DNA from: Amphiscolops sp. MND2022
Lineage: Eukaryota
Direction of reading: 5' to 3'
Length of the DNA: 64,000 nucleotides
Assembly (NCBI GenBank): GCA_964187785.1
Contig: OZ076411.1
Span: forward strand, 35,836,001-35,900,000
The notes under the pieces are model-generated. The model worked only from the letters and a program-made list of their open reading frames with translations. It was not told the origin of the DNA and made no database searches. Of the stretch, positions 6,509-28,132 are shown one piece after another (the stretch's first letter is position 1; each line of letters starts with the position of its first letter). The translations under genes were made by a program, and so were the position numbers.

Positions 6509-6540
6509 TGTTTTCCGTTATAAAGGGTTATAAATTAAAA

Positions 6541-6557: not shown

Positions 6558-6560
6558 TGT

Positions 6561-10188: not shown

Positions 10189-10312
10189 TGTCGCGCTATG
10201 ACTAACGCTCTAACGAATCACCAAAAGGCGCTTTCTATTATAAAAAATAACACTTGCAAAGAGAAACATAAAACTTGAACTAACGTTGTGTGGAGAGTGG
10301 AAAGTTGAAGTA

Positions 10313-10323
10313 AATATGGCGGC
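10313..10323 (+). promoter_or_regulatory. YY1-like motif in LTR U3
   Basis: AATATGGCGGC fits the AANATGGCGG consensus; single short motif. Confidence 0.3.
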
Positions 10324-10892
10324 GGCCATAACGCGGCGGCCTCGAAGTGGAGTAATAAGTAATGGAATACTACGGGAAAGGAATTGCACAAGTGAAAATT
10401 TCTATTTCTTACCGCGGATATTTGAATTTTAAAGCTGAGCTACCATTGGTAGCATGCAACACATGCCGGCCAGGCACTTCAACAGCTGTGCTGAACTGTT
10501 TTTATACCGCGCACACAGGCTGGAGATTCATTCTTTCCCGCCGGACGGCTGAGCTCAACTTACAGCTCTCTCTCTCTCTCTCTCTCTCCTCAACTTATCA
10601 ATTCCTCTACTTCTCTTACACTTACTCTCCCCCTTCTCCCCCTCGACTCTTACTCTCCACTTTCTCTTTGCTTACATTGCACTTGTCTTATCTCAGACTT
10701 ATAAAGTCAAACTTTCCTCCTTTTCTCCCTTCTCTCAAGCAAAAACTTATCTTTGCTTTTTCTCTATTCCCCAACAGAATTTTCTATCTTAGAAAATTCT
10801 CTTCAATTCAACTTGGTCTCCAGTTTGGTGAGTCGAAAATATCTTAGATTTTTTCTTTTAGAGGAGATTTTTTACTCTCCCTCTTTCTAACT

Positions 10893-11106
10893 AAATTATA
10901 TCTTAGAATAATTCCGCTGATTCAATTCTGCGGATTCTATTTTATAATAATTCCGTTGATACAATTCTGCGGTTGTTAAAATTATATCTTAAAATAATTC
11001 CGCTGATTCAATTCTGCGGAGTCTATCTTATAATAATTCCGTTGATACAATTCTGCGGTTGTTAATATTATATCTTAGAATAATTCCGCTGATTTAATTC
11101 TGCGGT
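10893..11106 (+). repeat. LTR-internal tandem repeat, 2.5 x 86 bp (five ~43-bp subunits); also at 27252-27465
   Basis: Recurring TAATTCCG(C/T)TGAT(T/A)(C/T)AATTCTGCGG core. Confidence 0.9.
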
Positions 11107-11776
11107 TTTCCCCTATTAACTCATTTGTCTTTACCATTCCCATATTCAAAAAGTCTTAATGCTATTCCTAAAAGAAGAGGAGTAGAGACTATAAAATTAA
11201 ATAGTGTTGTCTAAGTTATTACAACACCGAAACTGAATTTTTCGTAAAAAAACTTTCTTCGAACTAAAGGAAATTACTATGAATTTCCTTCGATGCTAAA
11301 TGTATTCATCAATTTGTGCCCTAGATTGAAATAGCTAAGATATTACTTCTGTTGCTGGTAAATAAATTTGGTGAGTTGACTGAATATTGTAAACAGTTGA
11401 ATAAAAACTGATATGTCTGAAGAATTTTATTATGTCCTGAAGTTCAGCTCTTTTATGTAATTCAACAAGTTTGCTAGCATATGCTTTTTTTTATAGTTCA
11501 GAGAGCTCATTTACATTCACTGCCTTGCACTTACTCACGCAAGTTCCTTTGTTCGCACGTACACGCAAGGCACTTTCTTTTCGGTATTACAAAAAATTAC
11601 GTTATTGAGACTTTTCTACTTGTTCTACTTCAATAAAACAACAGTTGTCTGAAAAGCACCTTGCAAAATGTTGTAACAGCTGAGCTGACTAATACGGATA
11701 ACAAATTTGGAATTCCCCTCTAAAAGAGGAAACTGTAAAATAGTAGAACTGAAATATATCCATGCGTGCGACAAAC

Positions 11777-11794
11777 TGGTGCGACCAGTGAGGC
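11777..11794 (+). promoter_or_regulatory. Primer-binding site of element 2
   Basis: TGGTGCGACCAGTGAGGC, 3 nt after the LTR. Cognate tRNA uncertain; the ..TGAGG end resembles elongator tRNA-Met complements. Confidence 0.75.
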
Positions 11795-12815
11795 TTCCTT
11801 TTTCTCTTACTATAGAGAAGTAAATGAGCAATCTGTTCGAATCCCTACTCTCAGAAGTTAGGGTTAACTACCTATTTCTCTTAATCTTACTTCTGATTTT
11901 CTTTTTTCTCCTACTGCCCCAATATGTGGCTTCTTTAGTCTATATAAATTATAGAACTGCTAGTAAATACTCTAATAGAATCTCTCCAGCTTAACAGCCT
12001 TTGGAAAGACTGTACTCTACTCAACTTAGTCTTCTCAATCCACGAAAAGGTTAGCGCTGATCTACTTTTACGGAAATGCTAGACTACATTCGGTCCTAAA
12101 CAAGAATGAAACTGCTCTCTAAAATGGAATCCAAACTTACAGTTGGGAAGTTCACTTGAGTCCAGACGGACCCTGAGAAAAAGCCCGCCTAGGTCTCCTC
12201 GGAGGCTGATTGAAAGCCGTGAGCCCAGTAGGTGTCCTGGAACCTGTGTAGCATTCCAAGTGGGAAACCTAGAATTCTTAGAATTCTAGTGATAGTACCC
12301 TAGTGTTTGCATGATAGTGATCTTGGCCCTGCGCTACTTAATCCTGAGGACGAGAGTGACTCCCTCTGTTTGCTACTTATACTACTTCTACATGAGCCAC
12401 TAAAAGGCTAGACTATCAAATCGAAGACCTATTGGACCGACTGTACTCTTTCAAAATTTCCTTTTGGCTTAATTCGGAGGATTGGTATACCCCGAACTAC
12501 CCTTTTTACGGTAATCGTAACACAAGTGGGATTTGTAAGTATCCCCTAAAATTTTGAAATTTCAGTAATAAATACGGGGAATGTGCCTACCCTGGGCTGA
12601 GATGCGCTAATTTCATTTTTACTAGCAGCGAATTACGGAGTATATGTTTTGTCAGACCTGCCTAATAATTATCACTGTTAGAATCATTGTACAAACAATT
12701 TTTACTTCCGCTCTTTGTAGTTACTCTCAAAAACCAGGAGTATCATACCTCATAGAGTCTTTGGCTTATTTTTCCTTACTTCATCTTCTATCTTTTATAA
12801 CCTCAATAGCTCACA

Positions 12816-14270
12816 ATGGCTGCGCAAAATTACTTGGCTTACCCAGACCTAGGCCGAGACCAATTCACAGGAACAGACCCAGATCAAGATCCTGAACAAT
12901 TCATACAGCTCATTGAAAAGAAGTTCCGGTTTTCTCATGGTGATACCCCAGCCAACGGACCAGCACTTGATGACTACAACTTCAGAAGAAAATCCTATTT
13001 TGCTACACTATTAAGAGGACCCGCAGCAGAGTGGTTCGAGACCAGCATCACAGACGCTAACACTTGGGCAGAAATCAGAGAGAGGTTCATAACGCGATTC
13101 GCAGATGGCAGAAACAAGTTTAGACACAGAATGGAAGCCGAACACGTCATCAGACGAGATGGAGAGGAAATAAAGAACTTCCTACACAGAATTAAAATAG
13201 TAGTCGGAAAAGGATGGCCAGATGATCTAGCCGGAGTCGCACAGAACAATAGAGACGCTGAAAGAGCAGCACAAGATAGACAAAGAAGACAGAGGTGCAT
13301 TGACTACTCACTGAGAGGCCTTCGACCCCCGAAACTGAGGGAAAAGGCACACGAATACTTAATGGATCATCCGAATGCAACTTGGGAGCAGTTCTCTCAA
13401 GCTGTAATAAACAAAGACCTTTCTTACACAGTAACTACCTCTCTCACCGGTGGAGAATCACACGCAGACCCACTTATCCAAGAATTGCGAGAAGACATCA
13501 AAGGAATCAAGCTACAAATCAAGGAACAGACGAACAACACTATCAATGCGATAGAGAAAACTGTTGATCCGAACGCAACAGGACGAAGAATGGCCACCAG
13601 GTTTTGCAGCTACTGCCGAACAAATGGGCATACGCCTAACTGGTGCAGAAAGAAGATGAGAGATGAAGAAATCAAGAAAGTTCAAAATGAATCCAACCCA
13701 GAGAGACGAATAACTTTCACCAATGATTACAACAAAAGAACTGGACCTGGACATGGTTCTAGATTCCAAACAAGACTACCCGATTCAGAAATCAGAAAAC
13801 ATATGGCTGTGGCACATCAACTAGCACTTGCTGGAGCCATGCAGTCAAACCCTGCCCGGAACCAATATGATATACCACAAAGAAGAAATTTCAACCCAGA
13901 ACGCCGACCTATGAATACAAGATTCAGTCCTGGTAACCAAAGATTTTCACAAGAAGGAAGAAGACCTTTTCTAAACAATTCTAACAATTCCAGAAGTGTT
14001 TCTCCTGGACCCCAAAGAGCAAGATCTCCGTTCAGCTTCAACAGAGACCAGCCTAGCTCTTTCAATCGCAACATACAACCTCTCCCACCAAGGAATAACT
14101 CCGTCTTTCAGAGACCGCAAAACAGAAACGAAAGACCTAACACCCCCACGCAGACTTATGAACAAAGATTCCCCAAAACAAACGACATGGGAAGGTCCAA
14201 CACAGTACAATTCCTTGAAACTGACTACTCTGTGAACTCGGTAGCCGACTTTCGCCCTTTAAACTACTAA
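12816..14270 (+). CDS. gag: Gag, 484 aa
   Basis: Retrotransposon-gag-like N-terminal region (LRGPAAEWF...W.EIRERFITRF), CCHC-like knuckle CSYCRTNGHTPNWC, R/N/P-rich tail. Confidence 0.93.
   Translation: MAAQNYLAYPDLGRDQFTGTDPDQDPEQFIQLIEKKFRFSHGDTPANGPALDDYNFRRKSYFATLLRGPAAEWFETSITDANTWAEIRERFITRFADGRNKFRHRMEAEHVIRRDGEEIKNFLHRIKIVVGKGWPDDLAGVAQNNRDAERAAQDRQRRQRCIDYSLRGLRPPKLREKAHEYLMDHPNATWEQFSQAVINKDLSYTVTTSLTGGESHADPLIQELREDIKGIKLQIKEQTNNTINAIEKTVDPNATGRRMATRFCSYCRTNGHTPNWCRKKMRDEEIKKVQNESNPERRITFTNDYNKRTGPGHGSRFQTRLPDSEIRKHMAVAHQLALAGAMQSNPARNQYDIPQRRNFNPERRPMNTRFSPGNQRFSQEGRRPFLNNSNNSRSVSPGPQRARSPFSFNRDQPSSFNRNIQPLPPRNNSVFQRPQNRNERPNTPTQTYEQRFPKTNDMGRSNTVQFLETDYSVNSVADFRPLNY
14258..14264 (+). 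promoter_or_regulatory. -1 ribosomal frameshift slippery site T TTA AAC
   Basis: Correctly phased in the gag frame two codons before the gag stop; the -1 frame is open from here into LLDTGA of pol. Confidence 0.85.
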
Positions 14271-14380
14271 GGTCTCCGAAAAACAAAAACAGCAGCAGTG
14301 CCCCGCTAAAATTTAGTCTTAACCTTTATTATTTCGCTGCCGGAGACTCACAAAAAGATAGTGGCTTAGAAATTGAATTT

Positions 14381-17300
14381 TTGCTTGACACTGGGGCGAC
14401 ATCCTCAATTATCAACTACAGAACCTTCAGAGAACTTTGTCAATTTCAACAAGACCTCGAACTCAACAGGAGCAACAACACAACTCGGAACTACTCTGGT
14501 CAAATCATCCCTATGATGGGATACATTTCGCTAAGTCTCTACTATGACTCCGATGGACAGCACAATTTCCCACTGACAGTTTGGATCACGGAGATGAAAA
14601 CGCAAAACCTGCTTGGAATGAACTTCTGCCAAGAGCAAGTCAACAAAATACATTTCGACCTTCCCGGCATAGAACTGAAAAGGCCTTTAAATACTTTCTG
14701 CTACGGAAGTCTTCAATTAAACAAAATTTACCCCTATGTATCACAAATCTTAACAGTCAAAATTCCTCACTCAATGTATATTGAACCAAAGACGACAAGA
14801 TGCTACAAGTTCGCTCCCGAAAACACGAAAAACTCCTTCCCCCCCGGATCCACGTTCCTACCCAATCGAAAAGCAGTCTCCACTGGACTCAATTTTATTA
14901 ACGTCCTATGTACGAGGTTCGAAAAGACTTTGCCAATCGTCATGGAAAACAACAAAAATCATACTATCACCTTGGTAAAGGGAACAATTGGATACTCAAT
15001 GCTCGACGTCTTGGACCAAGAAATCCCAAAATATCAGATTAGAAACCCTACAGAACTCGCCTATACCATTTTGAACGAAAATGAAGAATACAACGACTGT
15101 TTTCTACTACACTCAACTATACCCTCACAAGACTTGAGCGATTGCCTCAGGATAGAAGGAGGAAATTCAAAGACAATACTCAACAGGCCCGATCCAATCA
15201 TCATCTTTGTCCCTGCGGACCTGAAACCAAATAAGGGTTTTTCTAAAGAAATTCTAACTAACATACCCTCACTAAAGAACACTTGCTCTAAGCAAAGACC
15301 ACAGAAGGGAGAAACCATACCTTATTGGGACGAGACTTTGAAAAGATTCATTTATGTCCTAATCACAAAAACTAAAGCAAAAGACAAAATTGACCCACAA
15401 ATGCTGGTCCAATCCTTGGAAACGCTAAAGGCACATGCCAAAATGCACGGTATCAAGACGATCTCTATGTTACGAGAAGCCTCGGAATTAGAAGATTTCC
15501 AATGGCAAGATGTCACACACTTGATACAAGACGTTTTTGCCTATTCCGAAATACAACTACGAATCTTCACCAGAAACGAGCTAGACGTTTTCGCTATGAC
15601 CACAAGAGGAGACCCAGAATATGCGGTAGAAGACGAGATACAACAATTCTCAGAACAATTCCACCTCAAACACAGAGAGCTAGAAACAGATTTCACCAGC
15701 GATGCAAAGTCCTGCCAACCAACATGTGACGAACAATTCAAAATTTTCAGACCTAAAGAAGAAAATGAACGACTAATCGAATACTACCTACAATATCAGA
15801 ACAAGGAAGCAGTAAAATACATCAAGGAATTCGACTTTCGGTACTCCGACCTAACAGACGAAGAACTTGTCCTCCTGATAGACTTACTAATGGAAGCAAG
15901 AGATGTATACTCACAACATAAATTTGACGTTGGGAAAACCAAACAAAAATTTAATATTAAACTGGAACCCGGAGCAATACTAAAACGACAAAGACCCAGT
16001 AAAGTACCCTTACACTTAAGGGAAAGACTGGAGAAACTACTAACACAGCTTAAAGATGCAGATATCATCAGAGAAATGGGTGACGATGACGAAATGGGAT
16101 CTCTATTCGTGAATCCAATTATCTTACAACCCAAACACGATTATGTTAAACTGATCATAGACGCACGATATCTAAACTCGATTACTGATCTGACAAACTA
16201 CTCTTGGCCCTTAGAGCCCATCCAAACCATAATGACACTCATAAATGGATCAATCTTTTCTGTGAGTGATCTCTCATGCGCTTTTCACCAAGTACCACTA
16301 GACGAGCCTACACAGAAACTTACCAGCTTCATCATTGGCGGAAAACAATACACTTTCACCAGAGGATTCTATGGACTTAAAGGATTACCCAGCTTCTTCA
16401 GTCGTATGATGACAATCCACTTCGAACCCCTCATCAAGAAGAAACAAGCGATTACATACATCGACGATACGCTGATGCAAGCCAAAAGCAAACAAGAAAT
16501 GTTCACAGTAATCCAAGAATACCACAATTTACTACGAAAAGCCGGACTCAAAGCAGCACCCGACAAAACGCTTTTCTTCTTGAGGAAAGTCAAATTTCTT
16601 GGACACGTAATAACAGCAGAAGGAATACAACCAGTGGCAAAACGTGTTAAGGACCTCCATAATCTCAAATCACCAAAGACAAAAACCGAAGTCAAAAGTT
16701 TCCTTGGAGCACTCGGATTCTACAGCTGCTATATTAAAAATCTCCATGTTGATAGCAGACCATTTTACGAACTCACAAAGAAAGACACGAACTTCTGCTG
16801 GAATCAAGAACACGAAGACCTCTTCCAGGAAATAAAGAAACGAATCAGCGAAGACACAGTACTGGCAGTACCCTCAACGAAGTACCCCTTTCATATACAC
16901 GTCGATTCCTCTAACGTAGGGACAGGATGCATACTAATACAACAATTTCCCGAAGGGAAACGAATTATCTCCTTCAATTCACGAGTTTTTGCCAAAGAAG
17001 AACAAAAAATGTCAACCCTACATAGAGAACTGTGTGGCATCGTCTCCGCCCTTCAAACGTACGAACATTACATCATTGGATCCCCTTTCCCAATTTATCT
17101 ATACTGTGACCACAAACCCATTCTTTATCTTTGGGGACGAAAAGGACAAATCTCACCGCGATTCTTCAGGTATCAAGTAATTATATCCAAATTTCCAAAC
17201 CTGAGGATCATATGGACACCAGGAAGTAACTTAGCCTTCCCAGATATACTCAGTCGGAATGTCTCAATTGAAGAACATAAGACACATCAACTCAGCCACA

Positions 17301-19774
17301 AGATCCTACCAAATGACATACAATTCTTCGACGAACATGGAACACCGGTGCACTACAAGATAAAACATGAAGAAAATGAAGAAACTTCTAAGAACGACTT
17401 TTACCCTATTTTGTACGAGAAAGGAAACGAACGAAAAATCTTACATTTACAAAACGATGGAAATGACTTTACGGTCAACAACCTTTACGAAGAACCTGAT
17501 CTAACGAACATCGAATCTGCACAGGACTGTTTCGAGGCGGGGAAGACACTTGAAAAATACGAAGAACTACGAACCAGATCCGGCACACAAAACAGCACAC
17601 CCGATTTATCACAAAATACTTACAGTTCTCTCAACAGCGACACAGACGACGAAGCTCCCACGAAAAAAGAACCACAAGAAGTCAATGAAACCAACTACGA
17701 GATTAATACCGAAATCCTCTCAGAACCTGAAGAAGATACCCCCGAAACAGGCCAGGTAGTCAAAAACTTCAAAATCTCAGAAGCAATACCCCCAATACAA
17801 GAAAAATCAAAGAATCCAGCCCGCGATCTCGTCAACAAACTTGATAAACTATCCAAAGAAGTAGATCTCAACGTCACAACAATCTTACAAGAACAAATAA
17901 ACGACCCCGTGCTCAGGGTAGTCCGACAATGGGTGAGAACAGGAAACAAGCCTGCGCCAAAATCCCCAGAGCTACAGCACTCTAAAGGTCTTATGCGATA
18001 CTTCCAAGAGTTTGATAGACTAACAATAGAAGAGCCTGGAAACCTCCTTTGTTATAACGAACCTACAGATAGCCCTGAAGACGAAAATCTACGAATATGC
18101 TTACCTCTCTCTCTATTTCTTGCCTGTTTTCGAATGGGACATTACAATGACCTCGGAGGTCACATGGGAGCGGAAAAAACCTTCTTGAACGCCAAAAGAT
18201 TTTACTACTGGCCAGGGATGCACGACTGGATCTGCGCACTCACACAAGATTGTGTCAGCTGCCAGTCTAACAAATCCAAACAACGAAGAAACAACGAGGT
18301 CCCCCTAGAAGATTGCGAAACTGAAACTCAAGTATTCAGAACAATCCACATAGACCACAAAGGACCACTCAACCCTCCTAGTCGTGGAAACTCACATTGC
18401 CTCCTTATTATCGACGCCTTCTCACGCTACTTGATGGCATACCCTGTTAGGGACACAGGGGCACAATCGACAATCAACGCGATGGAAAAATGGATTATGC
18501 ACTACGGCATCCCGCAATCCATCATACATGACAGAGGAACAGCTTTTATGAACACGGAATTTGTCAATTGGACTAAAGAATTTGGCATCACCCTTAGACC
18601 AAGGACAGCACATTCACCTTGGACAAATGGCAAAGTAGAAACCCAAAATCAGCACATTGCACGATACTGGAGAAATTTCCTCAACGAATCTGGAAACAAT
18701 TGGGCTTTACTAGCAGCAAAATTTGCATTTGCTCATAACACCAGTGTCAACTATACCACTGGAAAGACACCATACGAAATAGTCTTCTGCAATAAACCAC
18801 AGATACCTATGAGCCTGAAGTTGGGTCTATACCGTAATAAAAATAAGAATTGCAGATCACAGTTCTGCAACGGACTGCCTCCTCACTGCCACAGCGAAAA
18901 CCAAGTTAAAAACGAACTGCTGAATGGACTATTAAGACCTCAACTATCTCAAAACCTGCTTGAAAGAGAGACCGCCTTCAAGAAAATCTATTCGTCCACT
19001 TACGAAAAATGCAGAAAACAAACAGCTCGATCTCATGCCTACAGAAACAGATTTAAACTAGGCAGCCATCTCAACATCGGACAAAAGGTTTTGTTAGAAA
19101 ACCATCGGAAAGACCTCTCCAAAAGTCAAAAACTTCAACAACTGCGATTAGGACCGTTTACGGTTACCAAGAGAATCACCAACACAACATACCAAATAAA
19201 AGACGATCAGAACCCCAAAAATCTCCGAACTGTCCATAGAAATCATTTAATAGAATACTTTCCCAAAGAGGAAACACTCCCCCCTCTTATAGAAGAATAC
19301 ACAACCCCCTACCGTGGAGACACGGATTTCTATAACAATTTTGTCAAAGGAAGAATAGAACGACTTAATGTTTCAGAACCACAGATACTCGGGGATCTCT
19401 GCATTTTACCAGTCCGAAACCAACAAAGACAGACCACCGCACAAAAACGAGTGAGAACTCCCCAGAGCACCGACTCTGGTATTATTTCCCCAGAAAATCA
19501 CCGGTTGGGAACACCAACAACTCCGGATCAGCCTACTACATCCCGTCCTCCTGGTTCAACTACTCCTATCCAAACACTGACGCAACAAATAACACCCGAA
19601 CCCTTGACTACCACACCGGCTACTTCGACCAAATCTTTGACACCCCTACAAGAACTCAGGCGAGCGGTTGCAAGTCACGTCGAAAGAAATCCCCGCTATC
19701 AGCGAGCACAACCCAACCAACCAGCACCACTGTCCATCCTTCGGCAAAAAACTCGAGTAGGCTACAAAGCCTAA
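14381..19774 (+). CDS. pol: Pol: protease, dUTPase-like spacer, macrodomain, RT, RNase H, integrase (translated as Gag-Pol from ~14260)
   Basis: LDTGA; RT LIIDARYLN, FHQVPL, FYGLKG, YIDD; RNase H VDSS, ELCGIV, CDHKP; integrase H..H/CVSC, IDHKGP, HDRGTAF, NGKVE; GPF motif. Confidence 0.97.
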   Translation: MLDTGATSSIINYRTFRELCQFQQDLELNRSNNTTRNYSGQIIPMMGYISLSLYYDSDGQHNFPLTVWITEMKTQNLLGMNFCQEQVNKIHFDLPGIELKRPLNTFCYGSLQLNKIYPYVSQILTVKIPHSMYIEPKTTRCYKFAPENTKNSFPPGSTFLPNRKAVSTGLNFINVLCTRFEKTLPIVMENNKNHTITLVKGTIGYSMLDVLDQEIPKYQIRNPTELAYTILNENEEYNDCFLLHSTIPSQDLSDCLRIEGGNSKTILNRPDPIIIFVPADLKPNKGFSKEILTNIPSLKNTCSKQRPQKGETIPYWDETLKRFIYVLITKTKAKDKIDPQMLVQSLETLKAHAKMHGIKTISMLREASELEDFQWQDVTHLIQDVFAYSEIQLRIFTRNELDVFAMTTRGDPEYAVEDEIQQFSEQFHLKHRELETDFTSDAKSCQPTCDEQFKIFRPKEENERLIEYYLQYQNKEAVKYIKEFDFRYSDLTDEELVLLIDLLMEARDVYSQHKFDVGKTKQKFNIKLEPGAILKRQRPSKVPLHLRERLEKLLTQLKDADIIREMGDDDEMGSLFVNPIILQPKHDYVKLIIDARYLNSITDLTNYSWPLEPIQTIMTLINGSIFSVSDLSCAFHQVPLDEPTQKLTSFIIGGKQYTFTRGFYGLKGLPSFFSRMMTIHFEPLIKKKQAITYIDDTLMQAKSKQEMFTVIQEYHNLLRKAGLKAAPDKTLFFLRKVKFLGHVITAEGIQPVAKRVKDLHNLKSPKTKTEVKSFLGALGFYSCYIKNLHVDSRPFYELTKKDTNFCWNQEHEDLFQEIKKRISEDTVLAVPSTKYPFHIHVDSSNVGTGCILIQQFPEGKRIISFNSRVFAKEEQKMSTLHRELCGIVSALQTYEHYIIGSPFPIYLYCDHKPILYLWGRKGQISPRFFRYQVIISKFPNLRIIWTPGSNLAFPDILSRNVSIEEHKTHQLSHKILPNDIQFFDEHGTPVHYKIKHEENEETSKNDFYPILYEKGNERKILHLQNDGNDFTVNNLYEEPDLTNIESAQDCFEAGKTLEKYEELRTRSGTQNSTPDLSQNTYSSLNSDTDDEAPTKKEPQEVNETNYEINTEILSEPEEDTPETGQVVKNFKISEAIPPIQEKSKNPARDLVNKLDKLSKEVDLNVTTILQEQINDPVLRVVRQWVRTGNKPAPKSPELQHSKGLMRYFQEFDRLTIEEPGNLLCYNEPTDSPEDENLRICLPLSLFLACFRMGHYNDLGGHMGAEKTFLNAKRFYYWPGMHDWICALTQDCVSCQSNKSKQRRNNEVPLEDCETETQVFRTIHIDHKGPLNPPSRGNSHCLLIIDAFSRYLMAYPVRDTGAQSTINAMEKWIMHYGIPQSIIHDRGTAFMNTEFVNWTKEFGITLRPRTAHSPWTNGKVETQNQHIARYWRNFLNESGNNWALLAAKFAFAHNTSVNYTTGKTPYEIVFCNKPQIPMSLKLGLYRNKNKNCRSQFCNGLPPHCHSENQVKNELLNGLLRPQLSQNLLERETAFKKIYSSTYEKCRKQTARSHAYRNRFKLGSHLNIGQKVLLENHRKDLSKSQKLQQLRLGPFTVTKRITNTTYQIKDDQNPKNLRTVHRNHLIEYFPKEETLPPLIEEYTTPYRGDTDFYNNFVKGRIERLNVSEPQILGDLCILPVRNQQRQTTAQKRVRTPQSTDSGIISPENHRLGTPTTPDQPTTSRPPGSTTPIQTLTQQITPEPLTTTPATSTKSLTPLQELRRAVASHVERNPRYQRAQPNQPAPLSILRQKTRVGYKA
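15188..15568 (+). other. TARG1/OARD1 (Poa1p-like) macrodomain embedded in Pol between PR and RT
   Basis: RFIYVLITKTKAKDKIDPQMLVQSLETLKAHAKMHGIKTISMLRE...FQWQDVTHLIQDVF..SEIQLRIF aligns by eye with TARG1 [45 protein letters not shown]...LQWENVSAMIEEVF..TDIKITV. Confidence 0.85.
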
Positions 19775-19782
19775 TCTGCATC

Positions 19783-20169
19783 ATGCCTTGTCATAAAGTT
19801 TACCTAAACCTACCATGGCAAGTTCCACGAGAACTCCAATCTTTAAACGTTCTACACGTTACAATCACAAAAATCTACTGGACCTACACAAACAAACTAG
19901 TTAGAATTTGCTTCTACTCCAACGACCCAGACCCGAGCCCCCACAAACAACCTACGCCCCGAAAATCAAATCTTCATGTTCACCCAGAATCAAAAACGTT
20001 TGCTCAACTATATCAACACCTAGCATACCATGCAGTCAACCATCACGACCCTATCCTAGAAGAACTCTTATCCTACATGCCTACCCTAATTCCTGACCTA
20101 CAACCTTCACCACCTAATACTCAGAAGGACCTATTCTGCTGCTCTACTATTTACTCACCTAGCTCCTAG
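19783..20169 (+). CDS. Accessory small protein A (128 aa), unknown function
   Basis: ATG 8 nt after the pol stop; shares a motif pattern with the ORFs at 21223-22173. Confidence 0.65.
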   Translation: MPCHKVYLNLPWQVPRELQSLNVLHVTITKIYWTYTNKLVRICFYSNDPDPSPHKQPTPRKSNLHVHPESKTFAQLYQHLAYHAVNHHDPILEELLSYMPTLIPDLQPSPPNTQKDLFCCSTIYSPSS

Positions 20170-20326: not shown

Positions 20327-20977
20327 CTACTCAATCTCCAGGAACCCTCCTCGCTCCGCCAAGCGCCGCAGCTGAGCCGCCCGCTCTCCCATGGTCCACA
20401 AAGAATACAGACGGGACCACTGTCCCCTCTCGAAACTGGTCAGTTGCGAAAAGCCGTTTATGTAGGCTCGCAACTGGAAAATTATGATTTCACCAAGAGG
20501 GGACAATAGGGTCTGCTCCCAACGGGCCCCCAGGTTAGCCCGCATGAAACTAAATAATGAATTGGGACCGGGAGGCCCCGAGACAGAGAACCCTGGAGTC
20601 CCCCGAAGAGAACTGGTTAGAGACGCCCAGTTTTCCAGGCGGTTCACGTCTCGGCGGGTATAGAGCCCCATAAAGCTCTGCTCAGCCGGGTTCTCCAGCT
20701 CTCCCCGGGCAATAGTAGCAGGCGCTTGAGGCACAATACTGTCAGTCCTCGGGGCCACAACCGCCACGAACGACCCACCACTAGAGGACGGACCTGCTGA
20801 AGAAGCAGGGGACACAGAACTAACAGCAGTAGAGGACGGACCAGCTGCAGAAGAACTAGAAGATACAGTTGTCGGGCCATTCCCCGACTCTTCGTCGGTC
20901 GAGGACTCCTCGTAGTAGTCCGAAAAGTTCTGATTGTTGCTCATTCTAAACACAACATTGTGCTTATCAAAAGTCAT
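20327..20977 (-). CDS. Antisense accessory ORF (216 aa): acidic, Ser-rich N-half and globular-looking C-half
   Basis: ATG-initiated 651-bp ORF; no long sense-strand ORF overlaps it; local composition differs from the A/C-rich sense genes. Confidence 0.6.
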   Translation of the reverse strand: MTFDKHNVVFRMSNNQNFSDYYEESSTDEESGNGPTTVSSSSSAAGPSSTAVSSVSPASSAGPSSSGGSFVAVVAPRTDSIVPQAPATIARGELENPAEQSFMGLYTRRDVNRLENWASLTSSLRGTPGFSVSGPPGPNSLFSFMRANLGARWEQTLLSPLGEIIIFQLRAYINGFSQLTSFERGQWSRLYSLWTMGERAAQLRRLAERGGFLEIE

Positions 20978-21222: not shown

Positions 21223-21444
21223 ATGATCATAATCTTCAAAATTGACAACCGTCTTTCACAAATCACCGATATCCAGAAGGAACCCTCAACGCAAAACATC
21301 ATCATACAAGCATACGCAATAGCTGAAGAAGAAAGTGAAACCTACACTTGTGTGCCAGCATCACCCATCTACCCTCTACTGGAGAGCTTGCTATATAACA
21401 ACACCCCTACTGAAGTCTTCACTAGAGCCAAGTCAGTCATTTAA
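21223..21444 (+). CDS. Accessory small protein B (73 aa)
   Basis: ATG directly after ctcacag; stop overlaps the next start (TAATG). Confidence 0.55.
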   Translation: MIIIFKIDNRLSQITDIQKEPSTQNIIIQAYAIAEEESETYTCVPASPIYPLLESLLYNNTPTEVFTRAKSVI

Positions 21445-21839
21445 TGTCCTCTCCCGGAGTCGCCGTGTTCCGCGGAAATAATTACTACTTCCACACACAG
21501 TTTCAACCTCCTGTTCCTTGGACCCCCATACAACTCAAGGGCCAATACGAAATACAGTCAATCTTCTACGAGATCACTACCTCTGCAATTCAAGTGCGTA
21601 TACTCACACCAGAAGACAAAGAAGCTCTAGTCCTCTTCCCTATTCACTTCGGCTCCAAGGAATACGCTTACTTATTCCTATCGTTCAAGCAATATATACT
21701 CCAACACCCTGCAGTCCTCAAAGACAAGGCTTTCGACGACTTGGTTTACTTTATGGACATCACTCTCACCTCCAACCCCTTTGAAGAAGAAGTTAGAATC
21801 AAATACCTTCACAGCCTAGTCGACACTTATGATGTTTAA
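21444..21839 (+). CDS. Accessory small protein C (131 aa)
   Basis: TAATG-coupled to B, overlaps D by 11 nt; element-typical codon bias. Confidence 0.7.
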   Translation: MSSPGVAVFRGNNYYFHTQFQPPVPWTPIQLKGQYEIQSIFYEITTSAIQVRILTPEDKEALVLFPIHFGSKEYAYLFLSFKQYILQHPAVLKDKAFDDLVYFMDITLTSNPFEEEVRIKYLHSLVDTYDV

Positions 21840-22173
21840 GATTCAGCTCAAGTTTCTCTGGCGCCACCCTGAAACAAATACACTTCTCGAAATTCTCTCT
21901 ATCGCTTGGAAAGAAAACGCACCTTCACTACAAATCGAACTCCATAGCCTCCGACCACAAAACCCAGGACATTGGCTCATCCCAGTTGACACCAACTCCC
22001 AAGAGGCTACTGATCTCTCACTCGCACTAAAGGAATATAGGCAAATTGCCTATCTCGACCACATCCACCCTCTAACACTGTTCCTCCTCAACAAGCTCAT
22101 TGACTTCCTCGAATTGAGACGACGAAACAAAACCTCTCCCAGTCTACAATCAATCCGTGACAACTACAATTGA
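21829..22173 (+). CDS. Accessory small protein D (114 aa)
   Basis: Start overlaps the end of C; shares the A/B/C motif pattern. Confidence 0.7.
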   Translation: MMFKIQLKFLWRHPETNTLLEILSIAWKENAPSLQIELHSLRPQNPGHWLIPVDTNSQEATDLSLALKEYRQIAYLDHIHPLTLFLLNKLIDFLELRRRNKTSPSLQSIRDNYN

Positions 22174-22218
22174 ACTTTCAGCAATGGTTGAAGTTAGTCT
22201 CTTTTAACTTCCTATTTT

Positions 22219-22672
22219 GGCACTTTTTAACAGTAGTGAGGTTACTACTATAAAATTTTAACCTCCGCTTAGTGCTAGTGCCCACTAAGCTGCCGGTTTG
22301 ATATTACGGCTTGCCTTTTTACGGCCTTATAACGGATCCTCAATAATAAAATATACTAAAGCTTCAATAATTAACCTACTCTTCGGCACTTTTTTAACAG
22401 TAGTGAGGTTACTACTATAAAATTTTAACCTCCGCTTAGTGCTAGTGCCCACTAAGCTGTCGGTTTGATATTACGACTTGCCTTTTTACGGCCTTACTAC
22501 GAATCCTCCTCTCTGGAACACACACCTATTTCCCTGAAATAATAAAATACTTATCGTTCCCCTCGGCACGTTTTAACAGTAGTGAGGTTACTACTATAAA
22601 ATTTTAACCTCCGCTTAGTGTTGTGCCAGCTAAGCTGCCGGTTTGATATTACGGCTTGCCTCTTTACGGTCT
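22219..22672 (+). ncRNA. Three tandem ~110-nt structured RNA elements (starts 22219, 22385, 22565)
   Basis: Conserved hairpins, loop-to-distal complementarities and a compensatory C-G to T-A change in copy 2; separated by unconserved spacers. Confidence 0.7.
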
Positions 22673-22750
22673 CTACTAAACACTTAAACTGATTCTTTAA
22701 CAGGGAGCGATTACACGGTTGATTCAAAAACAGACTGAAGAATTTCAACA

Positions 22751-24898
22751 ATGAAATTATTTTTCTTACTCTTCTTATGCGCCAATTTCGCGCCCGTTGT
22801 GAACTCACAACGTTCAACGCCAAACCTCGCTAGCGTTGCTAAAAAATTGCGAGTAACTCATTTCGACTGCGGCGAAATGACACAAAATAAGCTCTACGCC
22901 TTGAATCAAGTAGAGCAATGCAATGTGGCCCCGGAAAACTTAGAAGTAAGTCGTGCTAGCGTGACGTTATACACTAAACACTTTCGTCGCACTATCAACG
23001 CTACTATGTGCCGTGTGAAACACCAGAGTGAAGAATGGCATTGTGGTCATAATGACCACTCCAGTATGTCAATCCTACACAACGGAATCACCAGCGATAT
23101 TTCCTTGTCACCCGAAACCTGTAAGGCCATGGGCGAAGGCAAAGAAGTCATGATCCATGGACAACCCCTCAAATTTAAGAAAGGAGTCAAACAAGTACAG
23201 ACGAGAAACGCCAAATACGGAAAAAGTTGGGATGGAGTACGTGACCCTGATACCCGTAATGAGTGCAAGACAGGCGGATGGATTAAACGCGAAACCTTCG
23301 AATCTCATATTCAAGACGTAGAATTATCAGTCAAAACCAGAGACGGGAAAATCCTCACACCCTTCCAGATGGTTCTCCCCTGCCCCCTGGAACAACTCGG
23401 CTGCGAAACCACGTCATTGGACCCGTACGCCTATACATGGGCAGAGCCAGATAACTGCGTGCTCGCAGTCCACAGAAAAGAAATAGTGAATATGATCAAA
23501 CATGGCTCTAACTACTATATAGTTAGCGGCAACGACTCCACTACCAAGTTCCTATTCGAAATATACAACAGGCCACAGAAATACTGCAACAAACCCGATG
23601 ATGTCTACCCTACCAATTACGAATCCCTCTACGTTTCGACCCAATTTGGTGGCTTCGACATGACTTCTGGCAGACGACTCGGCATCTCCATGGGAGAAAC
23701 CTCCAAACTTCAATATTACTCACCCAACGATGGTTCTGGTAATGGCAGACTCCACCTCTTCAGAGGCCCCAGCGACTCCAACCCCAACACACCACATTAT
23801 CTCAACATGGATTACGAACTCCACCAAGGAACCAAGTTAGATTATCTCTTCTTTGAGAGCACCCGCTTACTCGAAGCTTCAGAGATCCAGCTATTGAAAG
23901 CTCAATGTGAGCAAGAACGAACACAAATCCTTACCATCCTGATGTTATCCATGGAAAACCCACGACTCGCCGGATACATGCTCACGGGAAATCGCTCGAT
24001 GTTCCTGAACACAGATGGTAGCCTCGCATGGCTCTACCACTGCCCGGAATCCCACTCACCTCTTCACACGATGAACCAATGCTACGACCGCATACCAATC
24101 TTCTACAAGGGAGTGGTCGCCTTTGTAGACCCCATAACCCGACAAACATATCCTAACGCGAACGTACAAAACTGCACAGATCGTATTAAGAACCTCTTCC
24201 AACTGGACATGGAAGACAAAGACTCCTGGTTCACCCTTACACCTTCACCCGAACATCGGGACCGGCCTGCTATCTTCGGACCCAAAGACATCCAGCCAAT
24301 GATTACCAGATCTTTCCCAGGATCACAGGACGCGGGAATGTACACTCCCAAGCAACTCTCCGAGTTTTGGGACAACATCCTCATCAGCGCCGCATCACGT
24401 AATGCCCTCCAGAAGTTCTCAAGAGAGCTCATCATACCCTCCATGGCCCACAGCGGACCAGAATCCTTCGCGTATTACGCACCTCGTACAGATTTCTATG
24501 TCGACGGAATGATTTCACCCGACTACTTTAAAAATCAGTTCCTCGAAACATTCGGAAGTATATCTTATGTACTAGAACTCTGCGGAGCGTACTTTGGCGC
24601 TTTCCTTTTTATCAAGTTCGTCATAGATATCACGGTACTAGTCTTCCGCTACTTCGAACTTCGTCACCTTACGGGTAACACACTGAGCTTCACTAAAACC
24701 TTGCTCAGTGCTTCGTACAACCTTTTCTTTACCTCTGTTTTAACTTCCGTATTTACCCCGCGGGCCCCTTTCGAGGATAGCATTGAAGACAAAAGGGTAA
24801 AAACAGAAGACGAAGAAAAAGGAGTAGAACTCCAAATCCTAAAACAAAAAGAGGAATCACTATATCCCTCGGTACAGAGCTTTGTTGCTCCAATATGA
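22751..24898 (+). CDS. env: Envelope glycoprotein, class III-like (chuvirus G / herpes gB-like), 715 aa
   Basis: Signal peptide MKLFFLLFLCANFAPVVNS; FDC...LYALNQVEQC and C...HCG..HS cysteine pattern; sequons NAT, NDS, NRS, NCT; C-terminal hydrophobic TM segment (LELCGAYFGAFLFIKFVIDITVLVF). Confidence 0.85.
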   Translation: MKLFFLLFLCANFAPVVNSQRSTPNLASVAKKLRVTHFDCGEMTQNKLYALNQVEQCNVAPENLEVSRASVTLYTKHFRRTINATMCRVKHQSEEWHCGHNDHSSMSILHNGITSDISLSPETCKAMGEGKEVMIHGQPLKFKKGVKQVQTRNAKYGKSWDGVRDPDTRNECKTGGWIKRETFESHIQDVELSVKTRDGKILTPFQMVLPCPLEQLGCETTSLDPYAYTWAEPDNCVLAVHRKEIVNMIKHGSNYYIVSGNDSTTKFLFEIYNRPQKYCNKPDDVYPTNYESLYVSTQFGGFDMTSGRRLGISMGETSKLQYYSPNDGSGNGRLHLFRGPSDSNPNTPHYLNMDYELHQGTKLDYLFFESTRLLEASEIQLLKAQCEQERTQILTILMLSMENPRLAGYMLTGNRSMFLNTDGSLAWLYHCPESHSPLHTMNQCYDRIPIFYKGVVAFVDPITRQTYPNANVQNCTDRIKNLFQLDMEDKDSWFTLTPSPEHRDRPAIFGPKDIQPMITRSFPGSQDAGMYTPKQLSEFWDNILISAASRNALQKFSRELIIPSMAHSGPESFAYYAPRTDFYVDGMISPDYFKNQFLETFGSISYVLELCGAYFGAFLFIKFVIDITVLVFRYFELRHLTGNTLSFTKTLLSASYNLFFTSVLTSVFTPRAPFEDSIEDKRVKTEDEEKGVELQILKQKEESLYPSVQSFVAPI

Positions 24899-24929
24899 AT
24901 TATTATCTCATTTCGTAGTTTACGTTTAG

Positions 24930-25532
24930 AATTTAGAACCCTTATTCGACCTCCCAAACCTGGACGACGACATCCCTAACTCTATCTTAGAAGACGACTT
25001 GCAGATAGAACCCTTATCACCTTCTGACCTGCTGTCAACTGCTTCTCCCACAACTATTACCTTTCTCCTAGATCCCCCAGACTCAACAGTTCCTTCTCCG
25101 ATTCCAAGCGCCCTAACAACAACACCCTCTCCAACGACACCACTACAACTCCCCTTTCCGCTGTCATTTACAGAAGAGGTAGCGCCTATCCCATCAACTC
25201 AACATCCACCTCGATCGCCCCAACATCCACCCCGCTTCGGCGGAAAAGACATAAGACGGGCACTACCCAGGAAACACCAACAACAATGGAATGACAAAAT
25301 AACAGATGACACGCCACTGAAGAAACAACACAAGCGGGAGTACTTCACTAAACGAGCCAGACACGTTAAGAAACCCAGATTCAACACAGAGTTGAAATAC
25401 ACTCTCCTCCCACAATTCTCAACTTGGAAAATCGTTTTCTGGGATAACAAGAGACAAGAGTACACCATAGAGAACCCAGCCCTAAAGGGACAAAGACTAA
25501 CGGTCCCCCTAAGAGCCATCTCAGCACAATGA
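24930..25532 (+). CDS. Accessory ORF X: acidic N-terminus, Pro/Thr-rich middle, basic C-terminus; no ATG
   Basis: Frame open from 24930 (track calls a TTG start at 24999); its stop overlaps the next ATG (ATGA at 25529-25532). Confidence 0.55.
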   Translation, partial: NLEPLFDLPNLDDDIPNSILEDDLQIEPLSPSDLLSTASPTTITFLLDPPDSTVPSPIPSALTTTPSPTTPLQLPFPLSFTEEVAPIPSTQHPPRSPQHPPRFGGKDIRRALPRKHQQQWNDKITDDTPLKKQHKREYFTKRARHVKKPRFNTELKYTLLPQFSTWKIVFWDNKRQEYTIENPALKGQRLTVPLRAISAQ

Positions 25533-26431
25533 ATCGGAGGCTAAACCCAGACGCTATCCCCTTCATCCCAAAAAGCACTCCTTACTTCCCCAAAGCTAAC
25601 GACTGGCCACCTCTATCCAGGACAGAGAATAAAGATGACCTCGAGACACTCGAGGGAATCAAAAGATTGAACAAATGGATCGCTGAACTAGAAGTCTCAA
25701 CTAGCCCACAAAGTGAAAAGGTAACCCCGATCCTAAGGAAATCGTTCCCCATAACCGACATAAAACAGTCTAGAACAAAGCTTGCTAGTGAAATGAAACA
25801 ACTCCAAAACTTGGCAGAAGAAACGCGGACTAAATGTAATCACTTGGAACTCACAATATCCGATCTACAAGCGACAATCAAGTTTCAAGGCGCCCTACTC
25901 AACAAAACCAACGTATTAGACGCAAGAAGCGGTGAACCCATCCTTTGGCACATACCCGCTTTTTCCACACTATACAGAAAAGCAAAGACCTCCCCGAATG
26001 ATACGTTGAACAACATCAAAAATAGCTTCACTAGCCCTATCTACACTACCCACCTAACCGGCTGCAAAATATCCCTCAGACTATTCCCTTATGGCGCCAA
26101 CATCTTCCGCGGAACCCATTCCTCAATTTCTTGTGATCTACACCCCAGCGACTTCACTCTCCCACGAACGTGGCCTTTCGAGCAACAATTGATCGTCTCA
26201 ATCATAGACCAAAAAGACAAGAACAACAAATGGTCCATCTCCTTTCCCTATCCCTCCAAAACAGAAGAGTATGAAGACCCGCACAAGAACGACTACACAC
26301 TCCCAGGACTGATGAGAGAAGACTTCATCGCGCACACAAAACTCCTGGTAAACTTTAGAGAAGCCTTCCTAAACAATGACTCCGTCATAATCCAAATTCA
26401 ATTTGACAGACCTCTTTTTTCTAAACCCTAG
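25529..26431 (+). CDS. PAM2 motif + coiled coil + TRAF-C/MATH domain protein (300 aa), lacking RING and Zn fingers
   Basis: ILWHIPAFSTLY...SPIYT...GCKISLRLFPYG...GTHSSI...WPFEQQLIVSIIDQ...FI....FLNNDSVIIQIQF follows the TRAF-C consensus (LIWKI, SPPFYT, GYK.C.RLYLNG, GTHLS, WPF.QKV...LLDQ, Y..DDTIFI.V). N-terminal LNPDAIPFIP. Confidence 0.88.
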   Translation: MNRRLNPDAIPFIPKSTPYFPKANDWPPLSRTENKDDLETLEGIKRLNKWIAELEVSTSPQSEKVTPILRKSFPITDIKQSRTKLASEMKQLQNLAEETRTKCNHLELTISDLQATIKFQGALLNKTNVLDARSGEPILWHIPAFSTLYRKAKTSPNDTLNNIKNSFTSPIYTTHLTGCKISLRLFPYGANIFRGTHSSISCDLHPSDFTLPRTWPFEQQLIVSIIDQKDKNNKWSISFPYPSKTEEYEDPHKNDYTLPGLMREDFIAHTKLLVNFREAFLNNDSVIIQIQFDRPLFSKP

Positions 26432-26533
26432 TGCTAAAACATGTCCCCCTTCCCTCATGCTCTTTCACCTAATACCTCTTTCTTGACCTGACCCCAAATT
26501 TCTCTAGTAAAGTTGTTGCTTTTTCACCCTGCC

Positions 26534-26544
26534 AGGGGGGTGAG
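26534..26544 (+). promoter_or_regulatory. Polypurine tract of element 2
   Basis: AGGGGGGTGAG 1 nt before the 3' LTR. Confidence 0.85.
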
Positions 26545-26545
26545 C

Positions 26546-28132
26546 TGTCGCGCTATGACTAACGCTCTAACGAATCACCAAAAGGCGCTTTCTATTATAA
26601 AAAATAACACTTGCAAAGAGAAACATAAAACTTGAACTAACGTTGTGTGGAGAGTGGAAAGTTGAAGTAAATATGGCGGCGGCCATAACGCGGCGGCCTC
26701 GAAGTGGAGTAATAAGTAATGGAATACTACGGGAAAGGAATTGCACAAGTGAAAATTTCTATTTCTTACCGCGGATATTTGAATTTTAAAGCTGAGCTAC
26801 CATTGGTAGCATGCAACACATGCCGGCCAGGCACTTCAACAGCTGTGCTGAACTGTTTTTATACCGCGCACACAGGCTGGAGATTCATTCTTTCCCGCCG
26901 GACGGCTGAGCTCAACTTACAGCTCTCTCTCTCTCTCTCTCTCTCTCCTCAACTTATCAATTCCTCTACTTCTCTTACACTTACTCTCCCCCTTCTCCCC
27001 CTCGACTCTTACTCTCCACTTTCTCTTTGCTTACATTGCACTTGTCTTATCTCAGACTTATAAAGTCAAACTTTCCTCCTTTTCTCCCTTCTCTCAAGCA
27101 AAAACTTATCTTTGCTTTTTCTCTATTCCCCAACAGAATTTTCTATCTTAGAAAATTCTCTTCAATTCAACTTGGTCTCCAGTTTGGTGAGTCGAAAATA
27201 TCTTAGATTTTTTCTTTTAGAGGAGATTTTTTACTCTCCCTCTTTCTAACTAAATTATATCTTAGAATAATTCCGCTGATTCAATTCTGCGGATTCTATT
27301 TTATAATAATTCCGTTGATACAATTCTGCGGTTGTTAAAATTATATCTTAAAATAATTCCGCTGATTCAATTCTGCGGAGTCTATCTTATAATAATTCCG
27401 TTGATACAATTCTGCGGTTGTTAATATTATATCTTAGAATAATTCCGCTGATTTAATTCTGCGGTTTTCCCCTATTAACTCATTTGTCTTTACCATTCCC
27501 ATATTCAAAAAGTCTTAATGCTATTCCTAAAAGAAGAGGAGTAGAGACTATAAAATTAAATAGTGTTGTCTAAGTTATTACAACACCGAAACTGAATTTT
27601 TCGTAAAAAAACTTTCTTCGAACTAAAGGAAATTACTATGAATTTCCTTCGATGCTAAATGTATTCATCAATTTGTGCCCTAGATTGAAATAGCTAAGAT
27701 ATTACTTCTGTTGCTGGTAAATAAATTTGGTGAGTTGACTGAATATTGTAAACAGTTGAATAAAAACTGATATGTCTGAAGAATTTTATTATGTCCTGAA
27801 GTTCAGCTCTTTTATGTAATTCAACAAGTTTGCTAGCATATGCTTTTTTTTATAGTTCAGAGAGCTCATTTACATTCACTGCCTTGCACTTACTCACGCA
27901 AGTTCCTTTGTTCGCACGTACACGCAAGGCACTTTCTTTTCGGTATTACAAAAAATTACGTTATTGAGACTTTTCTACTTGTTCTACTTCAATAAAACAA
28001 CAGTTGTCTGAAAAGCACCTTGCAAAATGTTGTAACAGCTGAGCTGACTAATACGGATAACAAATTTGGAATTCCCCTCTAAAAGAGGAAACTGTAAAAT
28101 AGTAGAACTGAAATATATCCATGCGTGCGACA
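26546..28132 (+). repeat. 3' LTR of element 2
   Basis: Copy of 10189-11773 with 2 extra bp in the (CT)n tract. Confidence 0.97.

Follow-up and report, generated by a model that had tools for sequence, protein, structure and literature searches.

Anatomy of a 17.9-kb, env-carrying Ty3/gypsy-type element and its accessory genes on a contig of Amphiscolops sp. MND2022

We analysed a stretch of 64,000 nucleotides (nt) from Amphiscolops sp. MND2022 (assembly GCA_964187785.1, contig OZ076411.1, positions 35,836,001 to 35,900,000 of the forward strand; hereafter the window, to which all coordinates refer unless a locus is named) and found that it contains a complete long terminal repeat (LTR) element of 17,944 bp at positions 10189-28132. 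Very probably it represents an intact member of a young, env-carrying and multi-copy family of Ty3/gypsy (Metaviridae, errantivirus-like) elements with the layout of a complex retrovirus and a conserved set of accessory genes. Vertebrate retroviruses are held to be distinguished by complex gene regulation and by accessory "immune-evasion" genes, and a comparable toolkit has here been assembled and kept under selection by an invertebrate Ty3/gypsy lineage, probably in corals. An original prediction, made from the letters of the window, had described the element as recently active and organised like a complex retrovirus. Both statements are well founded, as the LTRs have no mismatch, the element is present in many copies and its accessory genes are conserved, and the anatomy proved richer than predicted; roles in signalling and translation and the infectivity, which were also proposed, are putative.

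Boundaries, core genes and relatives of the element

The element is delimited by two direct LTRs with TG..CA ends, the 5' LTR at 10189..11773 (plus strand, 1585 bp) and the 3' LTR at 26546..28132 (plus strand, 1587 bp), which begin with TGTCGC and end with GCGACA. They are flanked by a 4-bp target-site duplication (TSD), TTCG, at 10185..10188 on the left and 28133..28136 on the right side. The original prediction had drawn an element of 18 kb exactly between these LTR ends, and its clean TSD and near-identical LTRs were also recovered: by direct-repeat search and local alignment the LTR pair shows 0 mismatches, with a 2-bp difference within a (CT)n run as the sole indel. Because there are no substitutions between the LTRs the insertion is very recent, and assuming typical invertebrate substitution rates we infer an age of at most a few hundred thousand years. 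A sequence resembling a primer-binding site (PBS) and beginning with TGG (11777..11794, plus strand) starts 3 nt past the 5' LTR, and a polypurine tract (PPT; 26532..26545, plus strand) adjoins the 3' LTR. Neither the window nor 12 loci yielded a tRNA gene to which the PBS could be matched. An open reading frame (ORF) within the LTR (10362-10847) shows no coding constraint, with a ratio of non-synonymous to synonymous differences (pN/pS) of 0.6-1.0, and was treated as non-coding.

All three core genes, gag, pol and env, are intact, as had been predicted. The gag gene (12816..14270, plus strand) encodes 484 amino acids (aa) with a Retrotrans_gag-like region, for which the Pfam match is weak, and one CCHC zinc knuckle. 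The pol gene (14225..19774, plus strand) lies in frame -1 relative to gag and is open from about position 14225. Within the gag/pol overlap, shortly before the gag stop, CCCUUUAAAC provides two in-phase slippery heptamers, CCCUUUA and UUUAAAC, and forms a candidate -1 frameshift site (14255..14264, plus strand). The domains found by Pfam along a 1797-aa ORF follow the order protease, reverse transcriptase (RT), RNase H and integrase, with the integrase last; the full layout of Pol comprises the protease, a TARG1-type macrodomain within a stretch of about 460 aa that has no Pfam match, RT, RNase H, some 300 aa of variable linker, the integrase and a Pro/Thr-rich tail. The integrase is built from an H2C2 zinc-binding module, the core and an SH3/p58-C module, and its C-terminal modules are of the Ty3/Tf type (PF22938 and PF24626; Integrase_p58_C, SH3_Tf2-1). 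The structural features of Metaviridae, namely TG..CA direct LTRs, a short TSD, PBS and PPT, are all present. By this anatomy, by the order of pol and by the integrase modules we assign the element to the Ty3/gypsy (Metaviridae) type. The env gene (22751..24898, plus strand, 715 aa) follows pol as a separate large ORF and encodes a predicted membrane fusion glycoprotein.

Copies and relatives of the element were found at many other loci. In assembly ERZ25074608 of the European Nucleotide Archive (ENA) one contig (ctg184109, locus L006) is 100% identical to the window, and at least ten loci encode an identical Env protein and share the gene order; in the gene calls gag or pol is fragmented in at least three of these ten, and the remaining loci seem intact or are truncated where the contig stops. 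A further locus of this assembly, L001, has the same gene order at 83% nucleotide identity to the window. The order is also the same in L003 (Env 56-59% identical) and L017 (Env 51% identical), both from assembly ERZ26859043, and is partly conserved in L002 and L016. It runs from pol through one small ORF, a minus-strand ORF and two to three small ORFs to env, which is followed by two further ORFs. The frameshift heptamer UUUAAAC is present in L001 and L002 and absent in L003 and L017. The Env cluster at >90% identity has 128 members, and Env homologues total 280. We counted synonymous and non-synonymous differences to L001 in all six frames, and for every annotated ORF the own frame gave the lowest pN/pS of the six (gag 0.05, pol 0.04, env 0.04). 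The original prediction had noted at least seven extra ORFs between pol and the 3' LTR; each of the seven has its lowest pN/pS (0.02-0.42) in its own frame, and this purifying selection argues that they are real genes.

Regarding the distribution of the family, the JGI metagenomes contain six relatives, three of them from samples Ga0126342 and Ga0126343, the latter of which is a Cyphastrea sp. 2 coral metagenome according to a preprint. Env relatives in Ga0126343 are 48-61% identical, and a more distant relative occurs in a Tara Oceans sample. Since relatives are found in a coral metagenome, the family probably resides in anthozoan cnidarians.

Identity between the window and loci L008, L009 and L014 varies strongly by segment: it amounts to 98.5% in gag, 76-88% in most of pol, 97-99% from 18.8 to 20.0 kb, 66-83% from 20.0 to 21.2 kb and 95-100% in the remainder. 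Against L008, L009, L011 and L014 the window shows sharp identity switches between 14000 and 21200, so that these copies combine, in mosaic fashion, two or more lineages that exist side by side. Template switching between co-packaged RNAs would be expected to produce this pattern, and gene conversion could also yield it. L003 is a "circular" contig of 17.5 kb (positions 1-17516, contig suffix _c) that holds the internal region and a single LTR and represents either many copies collapsed into one or a 1-LTR circle. The 5' LTR holds tandem repeats of 39, 47 and 86 nt at 10893-11105 and a (CT)n run; the repeats recur at 27252-27464 in the window, and L003 has repeats of 59 nt at 13462-13661. Despite their large divergence the LTR repeats of the window and of L003 have the short motif CAATTCTGC in common, and they may act as enhancer-like units.

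Accessory genes and the structured RNA upstream of env

Five genes are located between pol and env. The first, o128 (19783..20169, plus strand, 128 aa, pN/pS 0.09), belongs to no known family and has a homologue in L003 with 46-48% identity. It is followed by the antisense gene m216 (20327..20977, minus strand), whose frame has a pN/pS of 0.28 as opposed to 0.50 for the plus-strand partner frame. The minus-strand ORF is open in all lineages examined (198-233 aa), but the competing plus-strand gene calls are not. Homologues of m216 fall into six clusters with 53-92% identity and share a helical C-terminal domain of about 115 aa, preceded by an acidic, Ser/Gly/Pro-rich N-terminal half of variable length that looks disordered. 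An AlphaFold model of m216 reached a predicted local distance difference test (pLDDT) score of 53 and gave no fold match at E<4, and no clear poly(A) signal was found downstream of the m216 stop. A TATA-like motif is present on the minus strand at 20982-20995, about 40-50 nt upstream of the conserved m216 Met.

The remaining three genes, o73 (21223..21444, plus strand, pN/pS 0.02), o131 (21444..21839, plus strand, pN/pS 0.10) and o114 (21829..22173, plus strand, pN/pS 0.18), are tightly packed. The stop of o73 overlaps the start of o131 (UAAUG), and o131 overlaps o114 by 11 nt, as do their counterparts in L003, where o73 has a weak positional homologue. An exhaustive search among 1.8 billion proteins returned four cluster representatives for the orphan o131, all of them internal to the family. 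ATG triplets are depleted in this part of the element, with 5 observed and 10 expected at 21223-22173, and 1 observed and 8.6 expected at 22174-22750. The tight stop-start junctions and the scarce ATGs suggest reinitiation or leaky scanning on polycistronic RNAs. An acceptor-like AG upstream of o73 is not common to the relatives.

Two more genes follow env, the first of which, o177 (24930..25532, plus strand, pN/pS 0.18), has the character of an accessory exon. Its frame contains no Met codon in any of the five lineages and opens in all five directly 3' of a pyrimidine tract ending in TTTAG. Because it lacks Met codons and has this common 3' splice-site signature, o177 is most likely an exon that is opened by the shared 3' splice site and joined, in a spliced mRNA, to a start codon further upstream. 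The C-terminal 70 aa or so form a conserved basic domain, and in every lineage the stop of o177 overlaps the ATG of the following ORF (AUGA). At position 22946, 65 codons into env and in phase 0, we noticed a GTAAGT that would join in frame to the exon at 24930; its conservation in the relatives is no greater than the Val-Ser codons require, and it remains a candidate donor. Two distant relatives differ in this region. L021 (Env 41% identical) carries three post-env ORFs of 338, 92 and 290 aa at 9741-12095, part of which resembles the C-terminal domain of o177 (33% identity over 78 aa), and because of this similarity the domain seems to be older than the rest of the cassette. L004, from the Tara Oceans metagenome (Env 39-42% identical), has at 10573-12570 six tandem ORFs of 75-103 aa with overlapping stops and starts and then a RING-finger ORF, that is, a different accessory cassette in the place where o177 and its downstream neighbour stand in the window.

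Just upstream of env, repeats at 22204-22727 resolve into three tandem units with a 97-nt core each (22229..22326, 22396..22493 and 22575..22671, all on the plus strand), for which we predict four hairpins with the invariant loops ACUACUAUAAAAUUUU and GUUUGAUAUUA. No other nucleotide sequence of the element is as well conserved as this core: its identity to L001 is 94-95%, compared with 83% in its flanks, blastn gives no other match to L002, and in L003, a locus with saturated synonymous sites, 88% identity is retained. In our first alignment the four hairpins show compensatory changes at 11 of 22 pairs. Pairing is kept in 91% of the cells as against at most 55% with the partners slid, and none of 500 shuffles reached the observed values. 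A covariance model matches just upstream of env, on the plus strand only, and it also matches L017 and L024 (a Cyphastrea coral metagenome contig), both of which were outside model building. When these two are added, 13 of 22 pairs covary, in an alignment that was fitted to the model and thereby favours the structure. The original prediction had spoken of structured repeats, and the compensatory changes support hairpins in them. No match was found in Rfam 15 at E<=1 over positions 10100-28200. Most likely the RNA serves as a cis element for export, translation or packaging.

The repeats could alternatively act as DNA, namely as an internal TATA-containing promoter and enhancer array for env and the genes downstream of it. 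We consider this rather unlikely, though it deserves to be taken seriously. Every unit contains the invariant CTATAAAA, the tandem arrangement is enhancer-like, the interval of 577 nt up to the env ATG is almost free of ATGs as described above, and a single unit folds on the plus strand with unremarkable energy (z between -0.5 and -1.9). Against it stand the compensatory changes in all four helices, including G-U pairs that are functional only on the plus strand, and the position of the TATA-like run CTATAAAA in a hairpin loop with a covarying stem. Because CTATAAAA lies within a loop a promoter role keeps some probability beside that of a folded RNA, and the two roles are not mutually exclusive.

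The macrodomain in Pol and the TRAF-C protein

The insert between protease and RT (15131..15610, plus strand) was identified as a macrodomain of the OARD1/TARG1 type. A single-sequence phmmer search against PDB matched human O-acetyl-ADP-ribose deacetylase 1 (OARD1/TARG1) with E=4e-11, and a profile built from five lineages matched it over residues 20-145 of 146 with E=1e-31, with weaker matches to DarG-type and other macrodomains. Membership of the insert in the macrodomain fold is thus solid. The macrodomain is present in the window and in L001, L002, L003, L016 and L017 but missing from L004, L018 and L021, which are more distant, and was therefore gained within the family; this distribution was read from the retrieved loci, as a word-based protein search gave only two close clusters. 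Between lineages it is the most divergent part of Pol (27-37% identity, compared with 60-88% in the flanks), and within the lineage of the window it is constrained (pN/pS 0.07).

Regarding its activity, the Lys of the L-I-T-K stretch is invariant in the macrodomain alignment, and the Gly-Cys-Gly loop is retained in L003, L016 and L017. In the window and L001 the P-K-I-G-C-G-L-D-type context of the relatives is replaced by L-R-E-A-S-E-L-E. The original prediction had assigned an ADP-ribose module to the element: the TARG1-type domain stood up to our analysis and matches OARD1 over its full length in the profile search, but since the Gly-Cys-Gly loop is lost in the lineage of the window, binding or hydrolysis of ADP-ribose by this copy is doubtful. 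Viral macrodomains are otherwise known from positive-strand RNA viruses, where they are embedded in the replicase polyproteins of corona-, alpha-, hepe- and rubiviruses. The macrodomain described here likewise lies inside a replicase polyprotein, in this case that of a reverse-transcribing element and at the junction of protease and RT. In the literature searched we found no paper on a macrodomain in the Pol of an LTR retroelement.

The second gene after env (25529..26431, plus strand) encodes a TRAF-C-only protein of 300 aa. It begins with a PAM2-like N-terminus (about 25538-25576, plus strand), its middle region is helical, and it ends with a MATH/TRAF-C domain (about 25943-26401, plus strand). 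The latter was detected by Pfam (PF22486 with E=9e-12, PF21355 with E=1e-10) and matches the TRAF-C structures of TRAF5, TRAF4, TRAF3 and TRAF2 (E=2e-7 to 2e-4), which substantiates the TRAF-C module named in the original prediction. No RING or TRAF-type zinc finger was found by Pfam in the 300 aa. The proposed PAM2 module fared less well: the N-terminus is similar, and L001 retains the motif, L017 does so in part and L003 lacks it, but its score stays below the Pfam cut-off. The pN/pS of the TRAF ORF (0.33-0.42) is the highest of all genes of the element, and the ORF is missing in more distant relatives that carry env.

We propose that the macrodomain and the RING-less TRAF-C protein would most likely counteract antiviral ADP-ribosylation and innate signalling through TRAF in the host, respectively; the TRAF-C protein would then act on a pathway of central importance for the innate immunity of cnidarians. 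With a lower probability, comparable to that of the promoter array discussed above, both could be structural or scaffold parts that function in particle assembly or targeting and not as antagonists of host defence. Strong constraint on the macrodomain of the window in spite of its lost glycine loop would fit such a structural role, and so would the absence of the TRAF-C ORF from distant relatives that still carry env. What favours antagonists of host defence is that the macrodomain is the fastest-diverging part of Pol and that the TRAF ORF has the highest pN/pS of the element, both of which are typical of genes in contact with the host, and that the relatives have kept the canonical TARG1 motifs.

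The envelope protein, spread of the element and comparison with known elements

Env shows a signal peptide, an ectodomain, a C-terminal transmembrane helix and a tail, and it matches the Pfam family PF24664, "Monjiviricetes fusion glycoprotein", with E=5e-31. Nine invariant Cys residues, the signal peptide and the transmembrane helix are kept over 17 homologues down to 38% identity. Searches of Env against PDB by sequence or by profile gave no match, so that its assignment to class III rests on Pfam and on a fold search with a model of low confidence. This AlphaFold model, built from the 17 homologues, has a mean pLDDT of 52, with residues 63-310 at 70-90, and is too poor for locating fusion loops. 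In a Foldseek search against PDB the top 50 matches were all herpesvirus glycoprotein B (gB), with E down to 7e-7, probability 1.0 and TM-scores of 0.12-0.17. Against BFVD the highest ranks went to the glycoproteins of chu-like, xinmo-like and rhabdo-like viruses (E=7e-20 and above), and gB came next. A class III fusion glycoprotein of the Monjiviricetes/gB type, as claimed in the original prediction, is thus supported by the Pfam match and by the gB and chu-like fold matches of a poor model.

The replication of the element may be pictured as follows. The genomic RNA would be translated into Gag and, through -1 frameshifting, into Gag-Pol, and the downstream genes would be reached via subgenomic or spliced RNAs, the common 3' splice site opening the Met-less exon 3' of env. 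Stop-start overlaps (UAAUG, AUGA and the one of 11 nt) together with ATG-poor leaders would allow reinitiation or leaky scanning, and the RNA upstream of env would act in cis in RNA handling, that is, in export, translation or packaging. Env would let particles enter new cells, for example of the germ line, and the mosaic identity between copies would arise by recombination among co-replicating lineages.

It is improbable that the element is a purely intracellular retrotransposon in which env and the accessory genes are passengers that play no part in spread. Amplification without env is common among LTR elements, the copies all lie on contigs with host coverage (90-172x), and viral-contig collections hold no relatives. 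Env, on the other hand, is among the most constrained genes of the element, the Env protein is identical in at least ten copies whose pol differs by 12-24%, and the conserved cysteines, signal peptide and transmembrane helix described above would have decayed in a passenger. That the extra 6.6 kb stem from nested insertion, from a capture of genes by this copy alone or from a chimeric assembly, as the element's length of about twice that of a usual gypsy element and the many other transposon fragments in the window might suggest, can be dismissed, since the comparison with other copies that had been proposed along with the original prediction revealed the same order and junctions in at least ten independent loci, in L001 and in L003 and L017 from another sample, all ORFs are under selection, and a repeat search found neither internal LTRs nor a second TSD within the element.

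Several observations weigh against our interpretation of an intact, virus-like family with a functional accessory set. IMG/VR viral contigs contain no relative and thus give no sign of a free virus. The Env model is poor, not only in its pLDDT of 52 but also in its TM-scores of 0.1-0.3. The window and L001 have A-S-E-L-E in the macrodomain loop where the relatives and OARD1 have G-C-G-L-D, which also replaces the Asp of the relatives by Glu. The first 16 residues of the TRAF ORF (L-N-P-x-A-x-P-F-I-P) score 12.6 bits against PF07145 in the window and 14 bits in L001, with a cut-off of 20. No convincing 5' splice donor was found for o177, there being no site with eight of the nine consensus positions, and searches of Pfam, NCBIfam and PDB profiles gave nothing meaningful for o131, o177, o128, o114 and o73. 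Finally, the frameshift, the transcripts with their splice junctions and the products of the small ORFs are predictions from the sequence.

Complex retroviruses are the delta-, lenti-, spuma- and betaretroviruses with genes such as tax/rex, tat/rev, HBZ and Rem/Rec. The element resembles them in its accessory genes 3' of pol and around env, in a downstream exon that needs an upstream start, in an antisense gene and in a structured cis RNA. In contrast to these viruses its Pol carries Ty3-type integrase modules and its Env would belong to class III, theirs being class I, and the accessory proteins showed no sequence or fold similarity to retroviral ones. The resemblance is therefore one of analogy only. 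A bolder reading goes further, namely that a cnidarian Metaviridae lineage independently evolved the organisation of a complex retrovirus, with a spliced Met-less exon for a basic protein, ORFs coupled by stop-start overlaps, an antisense gene, a four-hairpin RNA as response element for export or translation, and as antagonists of host defence a Pol macrodomain directed against ADP-ribosylation and a RING-less TRAF-C decoy with a motif binding the poly(A)-binding protein. Taken as a whole we regard this as tentative, and as less likely true than not in its entirety.

The closest counterparts were found among the "ancient errantiviruses", env-carrying Ty3/gypsy elements of non-insect metazoans with an HSV/gB-type Env, which are reported to be widespread in metazoans including cnidarians (Chary & Hayashi, eLife 2026, PMC13524379). 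As far as the main text of that article goes, they share with the element the gag-pol-env order, the gB-type class III Env, the occurrence in multiple near-identical copies and the presence in marine phyla. Compared by gene layout and Env type, and on the same textual basis, the element differs by its size of 17.9 kb, by five genes and the RNA between pol and env and by two genes after env; in the main text of PMC13524379 the terms accessory, TRAF, MATH and macro are never mentioned, and "additional ORF" appears twice, in a general sense.

A second parallel is Burro, a group of giant gypsy-like elements of planarians that carry env, MATH_TRAF_C and other host-like domains (Grohme et al. 2018; Arkhipova & Yushenova 2019, PMC6431247). 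Burro elements exceed 30 kb and encode gag, env and pol, in this order and in one frame, as a single huge polyprotein, together with BIR, BCL2-like, ankyrin and dUTPase motifs, and in the Burro of Dugesia a separate accessory ORF encodes MATH_TRAF_C (PMC6431247). Large size, env and MATH_TRAF_C are thus common to both. In contrast to Burro, the element of the window has gag, pol and env in separate ORFs, env after pol and a macrodomain insert in Pol, and Pfam detected no BIR, BCL2-like, ankyrin or dUTPase motif in it.

Retrotransposons of arthropods have captured glycoproteins of the chuvirus type (Dezordi et al. 2020, PMC7642597; PMC10084718). The Pfam family is the same, PF24664, and chu-like virus glycoproteins are the best fold matches of our Env, which is only 13-18% identical to chu-like proteins and is carried by a coral-linked Ty3/gypsy family rather than by an arthropod element. 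Precedent for extra proteins is given by the gypsy element Cer1 of C. elegans, whose CERV protein is needed for nuclear export of the genomic RNA (PMC10309623), and by rotifer LTR elements with extra ORF3s (PMC5408684). These elements have one extra ORF each, compared with a cassette of seven and an RNA here, and no sequence relation was detected between CERV or the rotifer ORF3s and the genes of the window.

The original prediction knew of no description of this combination of modules. Stated so broadly the novelty does not hold, as the gB-type Env (PMC13524379) and MATH_TRAF_C (PMC6431247) have been published; what is left of it are the Pol macrodomain, the antisense gene, the probable spliced exon o177 and the hairpin RNA upstream of env, none of which was found in the literature searched. 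The element lends itself to descriptive studies of how retroelements gain viral complexity, of PARP/ADP-ribosylation and TRAF signalling in early-branching animals and of cis-acting RNA signals. It is also a warning for annotation, as long "cargo" in LTR elements can consist of conserved genes.

Apart from the element the window is rich in transposons. Near it, at 1288-6052 on the minus strand, degraded pieces of a Ty3/gypsy-type pol (protease, RNase H and integrase) are spread over several ORFs. A GC-rich region (about 50%) at 36769-48032, also on the minus strand, contains about a dozen ORFs with matches to a CCHC gag, to RT and to integrase and represents a second, older LTR-type element in pieces, and an isolated RT-RNase H fragment is located at 57088-58131 on the minus strand.

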